Positions 18,131 to 28,443 of a stretch of DNA of 64,000 nucleotides are shown piece after piece. Position numbers and translations under genes: made by a program. The notes below the pieces were generated by a model. The model was not told where the DNA came from. It did not search any database and saw only the letters and a list, made by a program, of their open reading frames with translations. Numbering within the stretch: the first letter of the stretch is position 1; every line of letters starts with the position of its first letter. Origin of the DNA: Anthoceros angustus (lineage: Eukaryota > Plantae > Anthocerotophyta); the NCBI GenBank assembly GCA_010909165.1, contig MU008212.1:233491-297490 (forward strand), read 5' to 3'.

Positions 18131-21070
18131 CTAACCAGTGTTCTGCATCCCAGCAGCAATACCCTTCATAGTGAGGATCAATGTGTCCTCCAGCCCAGGC
18201 GGATACTGGGTGGTGGAGTTGAGCAGCACCAGGTCAGCAGCGGACGGGGCCGAGGCCACACCATCAACAGGGTTCCGCACACAAAACTGTGAGTTCTGGT
18301 CACGCATCCTCTTCAGCGTGTACGCCTGCTGCACGTTGAGGGCCGTGATGTAGGGGTCCCTGAGCCGGAGCCGCTGCTTCAAAGTCGGATTCCCGGCAAG
18401 AATATCCGCATGTCCTGCCACCTTCAAGAGAAGCTGCTTGGCCTCGTCGTACTTGGCCCGCATTGTGGCACCCACCTCCTGCAGCTCATCTGACACCAGC
18501 AGATTATCGTACAAGGCAGCGATCCTGGGGTCCCCCTTGGCGAACACCATCTCAATCAAGTCGATGGTAACCCTGAAGAACGGCCACTCCTCGTACATGG
18601 TTCGCAATGTATCAAGATTCTGCGGGCTCTTCTGCAGCGCCGTCCTGAACGCCGCCCCGAGCCCCAGCCACACAGGCAAATGAAACCGCGTCTGCGTCCA
18701 TGCGAAAATCCACGGAATCGCCCTCAGCGTCTCAATCCCTCCGCTGGGCCTCCGCTTGGAAGGCCTGCTCCCGATGTTCATCCGCCCGTACTCCAGCTCC
18801 GGGGTCGCCGCTCGGAAGTACTGCACGAACCTGGGGTCCCCGAAAACCAGGGCCCGGTACTCCACCGTCGCCTCCACCGCCATAGCGTCCATCAGCGCTC
18901 GCCACTCCGGCTTCGGCGACACCGGGGGCCGCATCCCGTGCTCCAGCGTCGCGGCCGTGAACCGCTGCAAAGTCCGGAAGCACAGATGCTCCTCACCGAA
19001 CGACTGCTCGATCACCTCCCCCTGGATGGTCACCCGCAGCGACCCGTTGATGGTGTCCGGGGGCTGCGACAGGATAGCAAGATGCGTCGGCCCGCCTCCT
19101 CGCCCCACCGTCCCGCCCCGACCGTGGAAGATGGTGAGCTTCACCCCGTACTGCTTCGCCACATTCACCAAGCTCTCCTGCGCCTTGAACATGGCCCAGG
19201 CCGCGGTCAGCCTCCCCGCATCCTTCCCGGAGTCCGAGTACCCGATCATCACCTCCTGCTGCCCAGCGATCCGCGCCAGGTACCAGTCGATGGAGAAGAG
19301 CCGCTCCAGCGACGCAGGCGCCGACTCCAAGTCAGCCAGCTTCTCAAACAACGGCACCACCCGCAGCGGCCTCGGCACTCCGCACTCCCGCTGCAGCAGT
19401 TCCACCACCAGCACGTCGGACGGGGCCGTCGCCATGGAGATAACATACGCCCCGAAGGAATCCCGAGGAAGGTCGGCCACCGTCCGGATAGTGTCCAGCA
19501 CGTCCTTGATCTCCTCCGTCATCGGCAGATCTGCGCCAAACAACGGCCGCTTCCCTCGCAGCTCCGCCAGCAGCCATTCCTGCCGCTGCTCCTCGCTCCA
19601 CTCCCGGTACGAGCCCAGCCCTAGGTGGAGAGTGATGGCGTCCATGACATCCGTGTGCCTGTCCGACTCCTGCCGGATGTCCAGCTTCACCAGGGACAGC
19701 CCGAAGCACGACACCTGCCGGATGAAGTCCAGGAGGCTCCCGTCCGCGATGGCCTTGTCCCCGGTGGAGCAGAGGGAGCGGTAGCATAGCTCCAGCGGCT
19801 CCAGGAGCTGGTCAGTGGAAGAATAGGTCTCATCAGCCGGGATGTCGGACTTGCCTGCAGCCAGCACCTGGCGGATGCGCTCCCGGGTGTGGTAGAGCCG
19901 GTCCCGCACGTCGCCAAGAATCACTCGGTAGGGTTCCCCGGGAGGAATCTGCTTCCAGAACTCAATGTAGTGCTTGGCGTCCTTCTTGGAGACGCTCTCC
20001 AGGGAGGCCACCCGGGAGCGGAGCTCGTCGCTGCACCGCCACATGGAGAGCTCGAACATGAGGTCGTCCAGCTGCGAGAAGTAGAGGTTGGTGGCCATGA
20101 GGCGCGCCAGGAGGCAGACATCGCGGGTGACCTCGGCCGTGACCCTGGGGTTGCCGTCCCGGTCCCCTCCCATCCAGGAGGAGAATTGGATGAGCGGGAC
20201 GCGGTAGGGGAGGCGCTCCTGCACCCCGATGCGGCGGAGAGCCGTGTCCACCCGGCGGAGGAAGCGCGGGAGTCCCTTCCAGATGGTCTCGTGGAAGTAA
20301 CTCATGCCGGCGCGCATCTCGTCCTGCGGGGTGGGCGGGTTGCGCCGGATCTCGTCGGTGCGGAAGGCGGCCTGGATCTCCCGCTGCAGCGCCTCGTCCA
20401 GCTCCTGCCGCTCGTCCTCGTCTTGCTCCCCGTCCGCGGCCTGCTCCTCGGCCAGCGCGGGGAGACTATGGCGGTGGAGCTGGGTGAGGCAGCTGCGGAT
20501 GCGGCCATGCTTCTGGAGGAGGGAGCGGCGCACAGACTGCGTGGGGTGCGCCGTGAGCACCAGGTCCACCGTCTGGTTCATGAGCGCCTCGAAGATGTCC
20601 TGCGGGCTCCGGCCCAGGCGGAGGAGCTTGGCGAAGGTGTCGTCCAGGTCCGACTCCGTCAACGCCGAACCCTCGTCCAAGATGCCACCCGAGCGGGTCT
20701 TGAGCGCACGGCGACGGAAAGCAATCTGCACCTCCTCCGCAAGGTTGCCCAGGTTGAGCATGTGGGACAGAGAACTGGCCACCACGATGGAAACTCCCGG
20801 TTCCAACGCGCTCAGCACCTCCCCGAGCTGCTGCAGCATACGCGGGTCATCCGTCTGATTGTACTGGCCCGACAACTCGTAGCACCGCAACACCACCTCT
20901 TCCACCTTCTCCCCGTGTAACTCCCGCAGCACGTCCAGAAAGCGGTCGAGCAACAACCCCTCCGATTCCACCAGCGTGTCATCCTCCGATACCTTCTTGG
21001 GTGCCAAGAGCCGCATCTGCGCGTCCATGCTCGCCGACTTCTCCAACACCGCGCCCGCCCTCAACGCCAT
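18131..21070 (-). CDS. PPC: Plant-type phosphoenolpyruvate carboxylase, single exon (~979 aa)
   Basis: Uninterrupted ORF with N-terminal phospho-motif [61 protein letters not shown]-type [13 protein letters not shown] and C-terminal MQNTG. I place the start at MALRAG (21070) rather than at the upstream GTG of the ORF track. Confidence 0.98.
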
Positions 21071-21160
21071 CCCCACGTCCTGGCACCCGATGCAACCTGC
21101 AAACATGCCGCTCCGCCCCTTGCCTCCCGCAACCCTCGCTCTCTGTTGAAGTCCAGTCTT

Positions 21161-21281
21161 CCTTTTAAGTACAGTCCTCCTCACGTACAGTTTTCCTTAT
21201 GTAGATTCTTCCTTATGTACAGTCTTCCTTATGTACAGTCTTCTTTATGTACAGTCTTCCTTATGTAAAGTCTTCCTTATG
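21161..21281. repeat. 16-bp tandem repeat (TTCCTTATGTACAGTC, ~7.5 copies)
   Basis: Units start at 21193, 21209, 21225, 21241, 21257 and 21273, with two degenerate units at 21161 and 21177. Confidence 0.9.
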
Positions 21282-21359
21282 ACCTTAAGTCTCAAGTTCC
21301 AGACACACGCATACTTTCAAGATAGTGCCTGAGCGTGCTTGAATCCTCTGTTTCACAGC

Positions 21360-22910
21360 ATGTTTAACCGCAAGTTGGTGTGGTGATCCCAAGTGTTATC
21401 AAGTTTGGATCCTCCGTTGGTGGTGATGGTGATGGCAACCCTTTTGGTAAGTTGTGAGGACTTCATCTGAATCTGTTCTGCTTTGAATCTTAGGGGCTGG
21501 TCATTTACCAATGCCTTTGCACTGTGTGTTTGGGCATCAGTTAAGCCGGAGACAACAGTTGTGGCAGGCCTGTTACAGAGTAGGCTTATACTGGCTGAAC
21601 ACATTAAGCGGTGTCGTACTTGCGAGGTACTTTTAGCTACATCGATAAATGAAGCTTTTCACAAGACATGTGTAACCTTCTCTTTCTCTACTGAGATTTT
21701 TTCCTCATCATGTGCCTGTGCAGGAGATTTTGACCCTTTCCCTTTGCAAAGTTGATTTGCTTAGCAGTCTGGAAGAGGACCAGACTTTGATAGACAAAAT
21801 CCCGGCTCTAAAGAATGACGCTGCACTGTTTGAGCAGGTAACCTTATTGCAGTACTGTGTATGATATGGGTGTGGTCAACACAGGCTATTGCACCAGAAA
21901 GAACACAGAACAGTTTCAGATTATTCCTAGAGTTGATGCCTAGTTGCATCTTTGCGTATTTTGTTGAGGAGCCATATGAGATTCGAGTCATGAGGCACAA
22001 ACTGGAGCAAAATCTTCGATTAGTAAATGCAGGTCTGGGCATAGCTGATGAGCTCTAACACATTTTAATTGATTGTCAATTGTCAAGCGCGTTTTTTCTT
22101 ACTGTTCATAGCATCTGTTAGTCCAGCTCCTCATTGACATTGAGTACAACATTGATGATATCCCTGGCATTGACCCTCGAGAAAATGCATATGGAAACGA
22201 GCAGGAGTTTCTCCCATGACTTGAAGCTCGTGGATGTGCGTTAGCAGTATGGATATAAATTGCGTCTCTGAGATCCATGCATGCTAACATCTCACAATAA
22301 CGTCATCGAACTACAGCTTTTCTTTGAGAATGCATCGTGATGCTCGCTTGGCTGACAGCAAGCTCAAAGATCTTGTGCGGCTTGCGCAGACGTTTGGGTT
22401 TCACCAGTGAGCACTGGATGTGCGCCAAGAGTCAACAATGCACTCAGAGGTCGAGCACGTAGCTCCAGAAGTTATTTTGGAAGGGACGGCATTTCCCAAG
22501 TACTTTCATGCACAAGGGTACTCTCAGCACTTTTCCTATCTGAATGTCTTGTTGGTTTGCAGGCCACACATGAGTTCATGAAATTGCTGAGCCTTGTTGA
22601 CGACTATGCCTCTCTTACAGAATCCAAAAGCTGGCTGATGCCCTGTCCTTGCCTCCTTCACTGGACAAACTTAAGGTGAGGGTTTATGATGTGCTTTGTT
22701 TGGTGGCTGTAGCACTAGGCGTGGGCTGTGGTCTGACTCTCGAGGTTGTTCACTGCAGGGTATTCTTGAAAAGATGTCAGAATCAACCCGGCAAGTGGTC
22801 GATGTATTCTTTGCCTGTGCTGACATCTTGGACATGGTCTCTCTCAAAGCTGTTGCCTCGTACATCGTCTCCATGACTAGCCATGCATCTCATGTGCTGG
22901 AGGTATGTAC
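21360..22910 (+). pseudogene. Decayed intron-containing PEPC fragment of atypical bacterial-like type
   Basis: Exon peptides: VIPSVIKFGSSVGGDGDGNPF|VKPETTVVAGLLQSRLILAEHIKR; ILTLSLCKVDLLSSLEEDQ; VEEPYEIRVMRHKLEQN; AYGNEQEFL(fs)HDLKL; DARLADSKLKDLVRLAQTFGFHQ*ALDVRQESTMHSE; DDYASL(fs)RIQKLADAL; STRQVVDVF...AVASYIVSMTSHASHVLEV. These are collinear with the PEPC core. In-frame TGA at 22408, frameshifts, GT-AG introns. Confidence 0.85.
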
Positions 22911-23102
22911 CATCTTCTAATGTGTCCTCGATTCCTGGCTTAACAGTAGGGACATGGAATTAAATATGTTGTTGCCGTGTGATGCCAGGTCCTATTCCTT
23001 GCATGGTTCTCTTGCCGAAAGCTGATTGCGAAAGACTCCACTGGCAAGTGCACAGCACGGCTAATAGCAGCACCCTTGTTTGAAACAACACCCGATCTTC
23101 AG

Positions 23103-23652
23103 GTATACTATGCTGGAATAGCGTCTGAGGGGCAAACTGAGCAGGTTGTGAGGCTGTCTTTTAACTGTTGGTTTCCACCATGGATAAACTATGGCAAAAA
23201 AATCACATTTCCCACAGTTGTTGGCCACTCTAAGCTCCTGCCTTGTCTCAGGTTCTAAAAAACATGGGAGAAGCTGGTGGTGCAAGCTATTCTTCAGTTG
23301 TCAAAACAACTATGAAGTAGGCCCACCAAACCTCCTGACTTCTTGACACATGTAGATACCTGGCAGGAACAGAATCGCTATGTGCAGGCATCTCACCTCA
23401 GGTTCTGGCAGGTTGGCTGATCTTGCCGACTTCAACGCAGTGAATGAAATCTACGCTAAATGTAAGCCTTGCCTCAACTTGGATACCTCATATCTGCCAC
23501 AGCAGCTTGCCTGGAAACTAATGACGACTGCCGGTGGATGCAGACTTCACAGGACCAGCACTGGCACGGTGCACTTACCAGGTGGCTGCATTGCCTTTAA
23601 ACGCCCGAATAGAAACAGAGTGTACTGCGGCGCTTCCCTCCTCCACGGGTAA
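23103..23652 (+). pseudogene. RidA/YjgF-family 3-prime fragment
   Basis: Exons GQTEQ / VLKNMGEAGGASYSSVVKTT / LADLADFNAVNEIYAK / FTGPALARCTYQVAALPLNARIETEC...*. The GPYSQA N-terminal exons were not found, and small deletions are present relative to typical RidA. Confidence 0.8.
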
Positions 23653-24061
23653 TCTCTGACTGGTAGGAGACAACTGGTGAACACCCTGTCCGATTGCTGG
23701 GACGTGTTAACTGTAGACTGGAGTTACATGGTTGCAAGATGCAACACACCAAAGGCTGCACTGTGCGACACGAAGACGAAGAAAGCTCTTTGTCGCCCGG
23801 CAGCTGGATAGGAATCGGAACACCTAATAACAGAACACGCTGGAGCGAAATGCCGAAGGGAAACAATTTTGGTATCTGTCAGTTCTGTTAGTACAGGTCG
23901 GTTGTTGGCAAACCCTAATAAACGAAGCGGTCTCGTGAGCTATGTCGTGTGCCAAGTGTGACGTCGTTCCCATCCAGCCAACTTCCAAGTTCCGACTTGC
24001 GCATTCCTTCCGCTACTGGAAAGCGCGAGGGTAGAGAGAGAGCGAGAGCGGATTATTCAGG

Positions 24062-24298
24062 ATGAATTTCGGAGATGGGGCCGGCGACGGTTTCAGGCGC
24101 ACAGGGACACCCTTCTCTCGCATCGTGAACCCGGAGCTATATGCCAAACCCAACCTCACGGTGGGTCTCATGGGCACTACTGTCTTCGTCGTCCTGCTCT
24201 CGAATTTCTGGTGGCAGCGGCATAGCATGGAGAAGCAACGGGAAGTGAGGCTGAAGAATGCTCCGAAACCGGTGGAGGTTCTGCACCAGGATGACTAG
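24062..24298 (+). CDS. SMIM8-like small single-pass membrane protein (78 aa)
   Basis: FSRIVNPELYAKPNLTVGLMG followed by a TM segment resembles the SMIM8/DUF4500 signature [20 protein letters not shown]. An upstream AAACCCTAA telo-box lies at ~23910. Confidence 0.7.
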   Translation: MNFGDGAGDGFRRTGTPFSRIVNPELYAKPNLTVGLMGTTVFVVLLSNFWWQRHSMEKQREVRLKNAPKPVEVLHQDD

Positions 24299-24463
24299 CT
24301 ATCTTGTGATGGTGCTGTAAGCAGGGTCGTCGAGAACACGAGCAAGATGTTAGATAATCCTAGTGATAGCAGTTGTATAGAGAGCTTGCCAATTTTGACA
24401 AACAGTAGAGACGAGAAATTCCCTCCCCCCCCTTTTTTTTTTTTTTTCCTTTCAGTCAGCAGG

Positions 24464-25459
24464 ATGGCAGGGGTTCAGTTTAGATCGAAGTGGGTTCTAC
24501 GGAATCTGCTTTCGGGGGCTGCTGTTGTGTTGCTTCTGTTCGTTCCGAATGGGGAGGCTGAAAATGCGGGAAACTGCAAGGTGAAAGGTGAGGTCGTGCA
24601 CCAGACTTTGAGACTTGAGTTGGCTGCTATCATTTGGGGCCACATGTGTGATATTATGTAATCGTTTTGGTGCAGATGTGCCAGTAGTTGAAAGTATTAC
24701 GGACATGGAACCTTTCACTCCTGGCTTTCCAGGGTTGACACATGTATCTGTTGCCGGGGTGCAGCAGCATGGTATGAAAGAGGTTAGTTCTCCGTGGATT
24801 CACGTGGCATTACAGGATTTTGCAGGTTGAAGTCTAAGAGTGCATGTGCTTCTGTTGTACAAGGTTGAAGTCTGGCTGGAAACGTTGGCGCCTGGATCTG
24901 CAACTCCGATTCACAGGCATGCCAGCGAGGAGGTTTTCGTTGTGTTGAAGGGGAAAGGAACTGTCTACCTGTCCAAACTTCAAACTGGGACTTATCCTGG
25001 GGAGCCAGAGACTGTCGCTATTGCAGTGAACTCCACTGTAAGGGTACCACCTAACCGTGTGCATCAGGTACTACCTGACGTTGCCCTTGGGTTTTTTTCA
25101 CCACAGTTGTCTCAGTGAATCATGATTCTTTCAGGCCTCGCATGTTCCAGTCGTTACGGTGATACTAAACCCTCAATATGCTGAACAGATGGCAAATACA
25201 AACACAGAGGACCTGCAATTCTTAATCTCAATCTCGCAGCCACCAATTAAGGCGTAAGTCATCAGTCTCTCCTCCAAGGGTGCGAGATTGGTTTTCCGTG
25301 TCGTCCTTATGTAAGCCTTGTTCCTGCAGGTTCATCTATACAGATTGGTCCACCCCACACGATGAAGCTTCGGTTCTCTTCCCATTCGCCGGTGACCCAG
25401 TCTCTAAGGAGTGCTCAGCCCCTGGACCTACCCTGGAATCCCAGTATGGCTTTGTTTAA
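24464..25459 (+). CDS. ABP1: Auxin-binding protein 1 (5 exons)
   Basis: Signal peptide; GLTHVSVAG...HGMKE; VEVWLETLAPGSATPIHRHASEEVFVVLKGKGT (box A); VPPNRVHQ (box B); NTNTEDLQ; FIYTDWSTPH. The canonical 5-exon structure is present. Confidence 0.93.
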
Positions 25460-26066
25460 GGATAAGCTGGGACAGGAACTTTAGTTCGTCTTGTGTGGTA
25501 CTACCCACCCGTGTGTGTGAATAAAGTTCTGAGCTTGTGTGCAGAAAATGTGCGTCCTGGAAGAGTGTACAGTTGGACGTCCTTGTCGTTCCAGTCAGCG
25601 ATGCCTGAGCATTCCACCCCAAAGACGTGTGATGTGTCCGCAAACCGCTTGCTTAGCTGATTGAGATACATAAATCGAACGTTACATACCGACATACAGA
25701 CTAAGTTGTTCAGATTATCTGTTGCAAACCTTCACATGCTGGTGACTGCCATGTTTGTGGGTGGTGAGATAGAAGGCTGCGTTTGACTGGAGTCCGGTGA
25801 TGCCGGCGTACGAAACAGCCACGCTCCTTCGGCGCAAGAAACAGGCAGCTGAAGGCCAAAGCGAGATGGTGGTTGAATGGCCGAGCTGGGAGCATGGCAT
25901 AAATGGCGAGCGCTCCGGTGTAGAGCTCCATCGCAACCTCTACACCTGCAATTGCCTGTCTGACGGAGATCACTGCCCTCCCGATCGACGATCGACGATC
26001 GTCGCCCATTCTACGAGTCGGCGATCCATTCACGTCCTCTGTCCCGCGTAGTGCGAGCTGCACTCT

Positions 26067-27341
26067 GTGCAAGAAACCATGGCTCCCGATCGCGAGGGCT
26101 CTGCAGCGGCCGATCGAACAGCGTTCGAATTCGAGAAGCTGAAGATGGAGGAGGTGAAGGAGTGGCTGGAATCCCCGGACGAGATTGCGGGATTCATCTT
26201 GGCGGAGAACGACTCGCGCCGGCCTACTGTGCGGCACGACCAGTATACCGACGCCGATTCCCGGGCGCATGAAGTGCCCATCATCGATGTGGGGCTCATC
26301 AGGAGCGGGTCTAAATCCGAGCGGCACAGGCTGACGAAGGCGTGCGAGGACTGGGGCTTCTTCAAGATTATCAACCACGGCATCCCGCTGGAGCTGGGGC
26401 AGGAGGTGGAGAGGCAGAGCCTGAAGCTGTTCGCGCTGCCCAAGGAGCGCAAGCTCCTGGCGGACCGGGACGACCGCGGCATGGGCTACTTGCCCAAGAA
26501 TCATGGCAAGCCCGTGGGCGATGAGACGGCCAGCCTGCGGGTCTGGGCAGAGTCGGCCAATCTCACCTTCGAGGGCAAGCCCCGCCACCTGGAGACATTC
26601 GCCGCCACCGTCTTCGAGACTCCAGAGGAGTCAGAGACCTTCCGGTAAGCGGGATTGCATTCAGGTAATTGCATACAATCTCATACCCCCATGGATCATC
26701 ACACACTGAGACGGGCATTGATGTGCAGGAACACGTACGAGACGTGGAGAAACGAGTGCGCGGAGCTGGGGCGGGAGCTCCTGGAGCACATGCTGCTGGG
26801 GCTGGAGCTGGGGATCGACACGAAGGAGGTGCTGGAGGTGTTCGGGCCGGGCCACATGAACGTGTCGGTGAAGCTCAACCGATACCCGCCGTGCCCCGAG
26901 CCGGAGAAGGTGATCGGGCTGTACTCGCACCGGGACCCGCAGATTCTCACCATTCTGTACCAGGACCAGACCGGGGGGCTCCAGGTGATGAACAAGGGAG
27001 AGTACGTTCCCATCAGCCCCGACCCAGTGGGCTCCCTGGTGGTGAACATCGGATCGACGCTGCAGGCCTGGACCAACGACCGCTTCACCAGCGTCTTCCA
27101 CCACGCCGTGGCCAACAGCGAGAGGACGCGCTTCTCCGTGGCCTGCTTCCTGGGCACGCCCCTGGACACCGTGCTGCACCCCTGGCCCATCCCGCAGCTG
27201 GTGGACCAGGAGCACCCGCAGAAGTACCGCGCCATGGCCTTGCGCGAGGTCCTCACCGCCTTCGCCAAGCACAGCCGGCAGCCCACCTTCACCCAGGGCG
27301 ACCGCTCCGCCTGGCATGTCATCGACTACTTCCGCCTCTGA
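26067..27341 (+). CDS. 2-oxoglutarate/Fe(II)-dependent dioxygenase (DOXC class), one intron ~26646-26728
   Basis: DIOX_N motif VPIIDV...ACEDWGFFKIINHGIP; NRYPPCP; HRD...H iron triad; RFS 2-OG-binding motif. Confidence 0.93.
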
Positions 27342-27657: not shown

Positions 27658-28443
27658 TCACCATACTGCTGTGCCTGGTACAATGAATGAAGAAAATGCA
27701 AGCAAGGGAGAAAAAACAAGCAAGGCTGGCCTAGTTGCGCACCATTCCAGACCGCCTGCAGCTACTTGCAAGTTCGACAATTGCACGAACCCAATCCATC
27801 CAGGGTGGACGAAGGAATTGCGCAGGTTGTCGACGGTCTCGGTGGTGACGCCCAAGTACTGGGCGATGGTGGCGTCGTCGATGGCGACGGGGGAGGCGGC
27901 CAGCAGGGCCTGAGCCACGATCTGCACCCCGGGGTTCTGGCTGTTGAGGGTGGCGAAGGCAGTGGCGTTGCCGGGGCCCACGTTCTGCTGGAAGTGCAGC
28001 AGGCCCTTGGGGAAGATGAAGAGGTCGCCCTTGTACACAGTGGTCTGGTAGAGCACGCCGGCGTTGGACACGAATCCCACTTTGAGCGCGCCGTCCAGCA
28101 CGTACAAGAGCTCGGAGGCCCGGTTGTGCGTGTGGGGAGGGGTCTGCCCGCCTTCGGCAAAGGTGAGCAGGGCGGCGCCGATGCCCAGGTGGTTCAGAGC
28201 AGGGTACTGCGAGGCGAAGGCCGGGCTCAGCCCCAGCCGGAATCGCCCAGCCGGCACCCCCGGGACCAGGCTGAATTTGAAGTCGTCACCTGTGAGGTTG
28301 GCGGGCGGCTTGCAGGGGAAGCCGTCCCCCAGGCTGGAGGCCACATCCCCCACGCAGAAATCGTCGATGGCTTCGTCGGCGAATGCCGCTGCCTGCACCA
28401 CCAAGAGCGCCAAGAGCACGGCCGCGGCAGCCTTGGCGGCCAT
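27658..28443 (-). CDS. Germin-like protein (cupin)
   Basis: Signal peptide, DFCVGD, PPHTHNRASE and FPKGLLHFQQN germin boxes with all four Mn ligands. The exact 3-prime end is uncertain. Confidence 0.92.
   Translation of the reverse strand: MAAKAAAAVLLALLVVQAAAFADEAIDDFCVGDVASSLGDGFPCKPPANLTGDDFKFSLVPGVPAGRFRLGLSPAFASQYPALNHLGIGAALLTFAEGGQTPPHTHNRASELLYVLDGALKVGFVSNAGVLYQTTVYKGDLFIFPKGLLHFQQNVGPGNATAFATLNSQNPGVQIVAQALLAASPVAIDDATIAQYLGVTTETVDNLRNSFVHPGWIGFVQLSNLQVAAGGLEWCATRPALLVFSPLLAFSSFIVPGTAVW

Follow-up and report, generated by a model that had tools for sequence, protein, structure and literature searches.

Between positions 21359 and 23102 of a 64,000-nucleotide stretch of the hornwort Anthoceros angustus (assembly GCA_010909165.1, contig MU008212.1, positions 233,491 to 297,490; the whole stretch is referred to here as the window, and coordinates are those of the window), nine short open stretches lie on the forward strand in an order collinear with phosphoenolpyruvate carboxylase (PEPC). 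A sequence-only reading of the window had placed seven or more exon-sized PEPC pieces, bounded by GT and AG, at 21360-22910. The peptides it quoted were all found in forward-strand frames and their collinearity with PEPC stands, but there are nine pieces rather than seven, and they run about 190 bp, or one exon, further. A GT follows eight of the nine pieces, the exception being the exon 16 equivalent, where CT replaces the donor GT at 22053, and each exon start that could be placed is preceded by AG. Single pieces match the Pfam PEPcase profile in order, at 237-256 (exon 1 of the nine), 379-406 (exon 6), and 464-507 (exon 8, E 3.7e-6). The stretch is very probably an unprocessed pseudogene fragment, equivalent to exons 13-21 of 31, of an ACT-domain PEPC gene that represents a third streptophyte PEPC lineage.

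The pieces, all on the forward strand, are numbered here after the 31-exon genes of the moss Ceratodon purpureus and the liverwort Marchantia, and were compared with contigs from one sample that comprised a DNA run (X1) and an RNA run (X2, recognized as RNA because its contigs are spliced). The RNA joints cited belong to an expressed paralogue of the relic. The exon 13 equivalent (21359..21446; AG acceptor at 21357-21358) reads HV, a stop, and PQVGVVIPSVIKFGSSVGGDGDGNPF, followed by the first base of a split valine codon; the stop is an in-frame TAA at 21365-21367, where Marchantia exon 13 has tyrosine (HVYPNS). RNA joint 21445>21540 connects it to the exon 14 equivalent (21541..21626; (V)KPETTVVAGLLQSRLILAEHIKRCRTCE), in agreement with the first splice proposed by the sequence-only reading, GNPF|VKPETT (the bar marks the splice), and this second piece has a phase-1 intron before it and a phase-0 intron behind it, as in Ceratodon and Marchantia. 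Joint 21624>21722 leads to the exon 15 equivalent (21724..21837; EILTLSLCKVDLLSSLEEDQTLIDKIPALKNDAALFEQ). The exon 16 equivalent (21969..22052; EPYEIRVMRHKLEQNLRLVNAGLGIADE), which has lost its donor, also lacks 12 nt that the expressed paralogue has near 22037, a loss that keeps the frame, and the paralogue RNA joints around it are 21838>21979 and 22036>22125, with letters between. In the exon 17 equivalent (22127..22235), LLIDIEYNIDDIPGIDPRENAYGNEQEFL is followed by a frameshift and HDLKLVD, and one base near 22213-22214 is extra relative to the paralogue. The exon 18 equivalent (22318..22449) reads SLRMHRDARLADSKLKDLVRLAQTFGFHQ, a stop, and ALDVRQESTMHSE; the stop, at 22408-22410, is TGA in place of a TGT (Cys) in the paralogue, and the paralogue letters at 22387, 22406, and 22410 encode E, L, and C, which is the clade consensus LAETFGFHLCSLDVRQES. 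Joint 22447>22561 precedes the exon 19 equivalent (22563..22675), in which ATHEFMKLLSLVDDYASLTE is followed by a frameshifting 10-nt deletion near 22620-22624 and then by QKLADALSLPPSLDKLK; alignment to the paralogue inserts 1, 7, and 2 letters behind 22620, 22623, and 22624, respectively. The segment previously quoted for this piece, the seventh, is actually ATHEFMKLLSLVDDYASLTE, the 10-nt deletion, and then KLADALSLPPSLDKLK. Joint 22673>22757 leads to the exon 20 equivalent (22759..22902; GILEKMSESTRQVVDVFFACADILDMVSLKAVASYIVSMTSHASHVLE), the piece with the PEPcase match at E 3.7e-6, and joint 22900>22987 to the last piece, the exon 21 equivalent (22989..23102; VLFLAWFSCRKLIAKDSTGKCTARLIAAPLFETTPDLQ, VLFLAW...PLFETTPDLQ). 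Apart from the two around exon 16, the five joints given here skip relic introns that are all GT..AG.

In total, the relic is truncated at both ends, has lost one donor, and carries two stop codons, two frameshifts, and one in-frame 12-nt deletion. It spans residues ~460-801 of Ceratodon KAG0580420 (P0126), with the N-terminal ~460 and C-terminal ~380 residues missing, and a tblastn search of the 64-kb window found no other exons of the ACT-domain PEPC gene. It thus does not hold a complete catalytic domain (TAHPTE, GYSDS.KD.G, FHGRGG..GRGG, and C-terminal NTG), and the GGDRDGNP motif reads GGDGDGNP with the preceding Trp changed to Ser, both residues being invariant in the clade. Because the terminal parts with most of the catalytic motifs are absent, and because of the nonsense codons, frameshifts, deletion, and lost donor, the relic is a dead fragment that cannot make an enzyme. 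Its eight introns are kept, which separates it from processed (retrotransposed) pseudogenes, and together with the disabling lesions and a closely similar expressed parent they define an unprocessed pseudogene fragment. The relic resembles other pseudogenes and gene fragments of this kind in its kept introns, truncation, disabling mutations, and expressed parent elsewhere, and its sole oddity is an adjoining gene of the same enzyme family but of a different lineage. It might be argued that the fragment is still in use, as part of a chimeric transcript or as a regulatory RNA for the PEPC neighbor or the parent, since a highly expressed gene begins ~200 bp away and most of the splice sites survive. 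This is very improbable given stops or frameshifts in four of the nine exons, substitutions that depart from the clade consensus at conserved residues, and the lack of an exact-match RNA contig beside paralogue RNA at depth 23-39. The relic itself is an ordinary dead duplicate with no visible function.

The RNA contigs that cover the relic exons are ~95% alike to it (17 mismatches in 351 letters in one contig, plus indels), and one spliced contig of the paralogue reaches 2,249 nt at depth 38.8. Before 21359, the paralogue RNA leaves the window sequence into TYRYAESSLH, which is exon 12 of the clade, and behind 23102 it goes on as HMPDALSELL, which is exon 22 and is not present in the window. 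The X1 DNA carries window letters and variant letters at similar depth (e.g., 14.7 of 25.3 at 22387-22410). The presence of both forms in X1, together with RNA that extends past both relic ends, indicates two genomic copies, the relic and an expressed paralogue. A parent with transcription and splicing is therefore located elsewhere in the same genome, where the sequence-only reading had suggested that one might exist; it looks intact and is known from contig differences and loose ends. Letters that vary in DNA contigs only are intronic (21643, 21882), which fits a copy made at the DNA level, and the kept introns, whose letters differ only modestly from those of the other DNA form, indicate that the copying did not happen long ago. 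Thus, the earlier view that a bacterial-like nuclear PEPC gene with introns was copied in part and then decayed agrees with the homology (E 2e-138), lesions, and introns of the fragment, but the fragment is a fairly recent duplicate, ~95% identical to its parent in exons, rather than an old remnant. Two Logan proteins considered as parents (P0169 and P0303) were rejected at 50% identity. Supplement 1 of PMC8784020 lists for A. angustus a protein, AANG010857, with a PEPcase fragment only (196-451, N-incomplete), which may be the annotated counterpart of such a relic.

The family to which the parent belongs was found with the exon 20 equivalent as a HMMER query against 1.84 billion cluster representatives. 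The search gave 13 matches in all, the best full-length one being KAG0580420 of Ceratodon purpureus, a protein of 1,180 residues that carries the database name ‘phosphoenolpyruvate carboxylase / ACT domain-containing protein.’ Used as a query in turn, KAG0580420 retrieved a tight set of proteins of ~1,130-1,215 residues from Ceratodon, Physcomitrium (XP_024391121 / Pp3c12_10250), Sphagnum, Marchantia (PTQ42341 / MARPO_0030s0078), Riccia, Calypogeia, Diphasiastrum, Spirogloea, Mesotaenium, Chlorokybus, Mesostigma, and a few marine transcriptomes (MMETSP) of unknown taxon. The set covers mosses, liverworts, one lycophyte, and streptophyte algae, and no hornwort protein appears in the similarity match lists of its members. 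The spliced relic peptide (327 residues, with an X for each break) aligns end to end with these proteins at 55-61% identity over ~335 positions (E 2e-138), compared with 38-40% identity to gammaproteobacterial PEPC and 27% to plant-type PEPC (PTPC). No match to the exon 20 equivalent was found among PDB sequences, and P0126 matched only PTPC and E. coli Ppc there, at ~360-370 bits, with no structure of bacterial-type PEPC (BTPC) among the matches.

Members of this ACT-PEPC clade share a Ser/Thr-rich, acid-poor, presequence-like N-terminal extension, one ACT domain, a complete PEPcase domain from residue ~175-245, and a C-terminal RNTG. Pfam ACT matches fall at residues ~100-220 and exceed the curated cut-off in two members. 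Among NCBIfam models, the ACT region (residues ~105-233 in P0126, P0298, and P0174) best matches the C-terminal ACT of bacterial GlnD (PII uridylyltransferase) with E values of 1e-9 to 4e-14, a sequence match that hints at glutamine sensing. This domain is present in the other clade members and is not in the window copy, which begins at exon 13. A further group of sequences (P0121 and P0138-P0147, from a cluster of 18, on metagenome or genome contigs of up to 239 kb) encodes a 286-residue product that ends in exon 20-21 equivalents, read through without an intron and 64% identical to relic exon 20, which shows a clade member with a different gene structure.

Gene structure ties the relic to the same clade. 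When the Ceratodon and Marchantia proteins were mapped back onto their own loci, both genes proved to have 31 coding blocks with identical boundaries. The relic comprises blocks 13-21, and its exon 13 acceptor, eight introns, and exon 21 donor agree with both genes in residue and phase (...N|HV(Y)P, GNPF|V (phase 1), ..Q/E|D/E, FE.|EPY, DE|LLIDIE, (I/V)D|.SLR, HSE|A, (V/L)(E/K)|, (M/L)E|VLF, and PDL(E/Q)|.MP). Orthologues with shared intron positions, for which the sequence-only reading had proposed a survey, therefore exist in a moss and a liverwort, and they agree at every relic boundary. The bryophyte and streptophyte-algal ACT-PEPCs thus resemble the relic across all nine exons, in identity as well as in splice positions and phases, and differ from it in being full-length, whereas the relic has exons 13-21 only, broken and without the ACT domain and most catalytic motifs.

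To place the clade among PEPCs, we built a tree from the PEPCs of 80 named bacterial genomes, E. coli Ppc, six PTPCs plus the PTPC that neighbors the relic, 21 clade members, and the relic. The ACT-PEPC clade, relic included, is monophyletic with support of 100/100, and a quick tree of 113 rows agrees. The relic falls within the embryophyte subclade (100/99), and relationships among the clade members as a whole reproduce the species tree. A gammaproteobacterial group (Thiohalomonas, Halochromatium, Methylophaga, Thiodiazotropha, and others) encloses the clade at 100/100, and E. coli Ppc and PTPC lie across a 100/100 branch from it. Forcing all eukaryotic rows together, a group named after the first tree was seen, costs 269 log-likelihood units and is rejected by the approximately unbiased (AU) test (p = 2e-49). 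The relic is thus not a PTPC, to which it shows 27% identity, and two of the outcomes named earlier as fatal to a separate class, namely grouping inside plant-type PEPC or best matches outside the PEPC family, were not observed.

After clade members, the next best matches of ACT-PEPC are gammaproteobacterial proteins (41-49% identity, or 45-49% in the searches made with clade members, and ~900-930 bits). The PEPCs of sulfur-oxidizing and related Gammaproteobacteria (Thiohalomonas, Thiohalobacter, Halochromatium, Ectothiorhodospira, Methylophaga, and Thiodiazotropha) have the closest PEPcase domain outside eukaryotes; unlike the plant proteins, they are ~930-950 residues long and have neither an ACT part nor introns. 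PTPC belongs to the same family as the relic (PF00311), but it reaches ~370 bits with P0126 compared with ~930 for the gammaproteobacterial matches. Bacterial alignments begin at residue ~200-230 of the plant protein, indicating that the ACT part is a eukaryotic addition. The sequence-only reading had favored a cyanobacterial, actinobacterial, or Firmicute affinity, which we reject because PEPCs of those groups are 33-36% identical to ACT-PEPC, against 41-48% for sulfur-oxidizer-type Gammaproteobacteria, and take up other positions in the tree. Motifs such as GSWIGGD do also occur in Firmicute, actinobacterial, and cyanobacterial PEPCs, and may underlie that reading. A gain specific to this lineage is not supported either. 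Orthologues range from the algae Mesostigma and Chlorokybus through mosses and liverworts to a lycophyte, and their tree reproduces that of the species, such that any transfer must be ancient.

Reviews and genome papers recognize two plant PEPC clades, plant-type and bacterial-type, and identify BTPC by a C-terminal (R/K)NTG and the absence of an N-terminal phosphorylation motif (PMC4196954). By this criterion alone ACT-PEPC members, which end in RNTG, would be called BTPC, and the relic might accordingly be derived from an ordinary AtPPC4-like BTPC of the same species and be atypical merely through decay. Both kinds are bacterial-like, non-plant-type nuclear PEPCs with introns, and the comparison with BTPC (AtPPC4, PTQ41595, and AANG012509) was made by domain table, not by sequence. 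We nevertheless regard this origin as improbable. Decay does not account for the motifs of the relic, given its 55-61% identity to the intact members of a coherent clade. In addition, a published CDD table separates the two kinds within single genomes (supplement 1 of PMC8784020). For Marchantia, it lists PTQ45560 (pfam00311, PTPC), PTQ41595 (PRK00009 specific, 19-1060), and PTQ42341 (superfamily only, 372-1191), the last being the accession of the ACT-PEPC clade member P0298. For A. angustus, it lists AANG013611 (PTPC, to residue 991), AANG012509 (PRK00009, 19-1103), and AANG007402 (superfamily, 358-1149), and for Physcomitrium, it lists Pp3c12_10250 (361-1179) and no BTPC. AtPPC4 (At1g68750) has its PRK00009 match at 19-1032, like Marchantia PTQ41595 (PMC8784020). 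BTPCs are thus PRK00009-specific from residue 19, and ACT-PEPCs give a superfamily match from ~360-370, after an extra N-terminal region. The distinct patterns indicate that BTPC and ACT-PEPC coexist as separate genes, and a separate canonical BTPC in both Marchantia and Anthoceros supports a third class. The authors of that table dropped the third kind from their analysis as ‘other PEPcase superfamily’ (PMC8784020). No canonical BTPC occurs among the best 120 matches of two clade members (P0126 and P0310), although gammaproteobacterial PEPCs appear there, and the match list of the neighboring PTPC contained none either. BTPC genes have ~20 exons, compared with 31 in ACT-PEPC. The earlier proposal of a third PEPC class is thus supported, by the tree on the plant-type side (AU p = 2e-49) and by the domain table on the BTPC side.

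We consider it somewhat probable that streptophytes from Mesostigma and Chlorokybus to lycophytes keep an overlooked, vertically inherited third PEPC lineage, encoded by a 31-exon gene with a presequence, a GlnD-like ACT domain, and a PEPcase domain of gammaproteobacterial ancestry, and that this lineage was apparently lost in seed plants. Its product may be an anaplerotic enzyme that senses amino acids, perhaps glutamine, and possibly acts in plastids, and the relic would show that Anthoceros has the gene, expresses it, and duplicated it recently. A PEPC of this class would be under allosteric amino-acid control, most likely by glutamine, through the GlnD-like ACT domain, and the composition of the N-terminus suggests organelle import and a possible plastid location. 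A literature search by ACT-domain PEPC and by gene identifiers found no published description, and the members bear automatic database names only. The P. patens protein A9SLH0 was reported as a transfer candidate that clusters among bacteria (Peng et al., 2012), and a link between A9SLH0 and the ACT-PEPC clade could not be made. The gene family behind the relic thus looks undescribed, and the fragment matters as a lead to it. If the lineage is confirmed apart from BTPC, the numbers of PEPC genes reported for bryophytes, lycophytes, and streptophyte algae, and the genes called ‘BTPC’ there, would need revision, a second bacterial donor would enter the PEPC history of the green lineage, and the fused ACT domain would tie nitrogen status directly to anaplerotic carbon flow in a way that can be tested in Marchantia or Physcomitrium.

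Several observations weigh against this interpretation. First, the parent is visible only through contig differences and loose ends, so that an intact, full-length gene with an ACT domain is a prediction. Second, the separation from BTPC is based on the domain table of PMC8784020 and on absence from the best 120 matches, not on a joint tree. Third, no RNA contig matches the relic exactly, and contigs are unable to prove silence. Fourth, a search for terminal repeats or other marks of a mobile element found nothing convincing within 20900-26500. Finally, the head-to-head position of the relic beside an unrelated PTPC gene may be a coincidence.

This PTPC gene (18131..21106, reverse strand) is intact and intronless, encodes 991 residues from Met27 of the listed open reading frame (18131-21184), and ends in QNTG. 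Its ATG (21106-21104) lies ~250 bp from the relic (~290 bp in the sequence-only reading), and the functional PEPC neighbor that was predicted there is real, intact, and expressed, with an unspliced RNA contig over 18612-21156 at depth 288. The protein has an N-terminal motif of 11 residues and is 76% identical to its best matches, the Marchantia and Ceratodon PTPCs. When this neighbor was used as a probe against the window, it matched the relic only weakly, and an origin of the relic as its copy was therefore rejected. About ten exons are usual for PTPC genes in land plants. The GC content of the gene is 60-66%, compared with 46% in its surroundings, and an intronless gene of 65% GC in such surroundings could be a retrogene that has turned into a working gene. 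DNA and RNA contigs match 18603-21156 with 3 differences in 2,545 letters and depart from the window at both ends, the RNA form having 75 other letters beyond 21156, which points to a further copy of the PTPC gene or to a structural variant in a different flanking sequence.

The contigs that leave the window sequence at 21156, together with the GC contrast between the relic (46%) and its neighbor (65%), might be taken to mean that the bacterial-like pieces are foreign to this neighborhood of plant genes and were placed there by contamination or misassembly. We find this scarcely credible, as the pieces are separated by spliceosomal introns at positions common to moss and liverwort genes, and a difference-free DNA contig of 482 nt over 21117-21598 spans the junction at a depth like that of the rest.

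Between the 5′ end of the PTPC gene and the relic is a 16-bp tandem repeat (21146..21297) with about nine copies of a GTACAGTCTTCCTTAT-like unit. Directly behind the relic, after 24 bp, are the 3′ exons of a RidA/L-PSP-like gene (23127..23723, forward strand), a 5′-truncated piece of four exons with a weak PF01042 match (E 0.003). Its RNA comes from a ~92%-identical expressed paralogue (joints 23151>23271, 23313>23412, and 23461>23544) with a loose end before 23127, and the piece looks like a second dead fragment. These features bear on how the relic was copied, which may have been by segmental duplication later cut by deletions, or by capture of gene pieces by a mobile element such as a Pack-MULE or Helitron. 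Two unrelated, truncated, intron-bearing pieces 24 bp apart, each ~92-95% like an expressed gene elsewhere and bordered by the tandem array, would suit capture. However, the stretch searched for terminal inverted repeats yielded no hallmarks of an element, and if the parent PEPC and RidA genes adjoin, duplication with one internal deletion gives the same layout. Moreover, an RNA contig ~93% alike over 23732-24000, beside a faint exact one, indicates a diverged but expressed paralogue of the next downstream gene as well, consistent with duplication of a larger block. Either route would fit, and capture is rather unlikely. Further downstream, the open reading frames at 23732-25120 (forward), 26067-27341 (forward), and 27658-28443 (reverse) encode what we take, from their translations, to be an ABP1-type cupin (with a signal peptide and HRHASEEVFVVLKG), a 2-oxoglutarate/Fe(II) oxygenase, and a germin-like protein, respectively.

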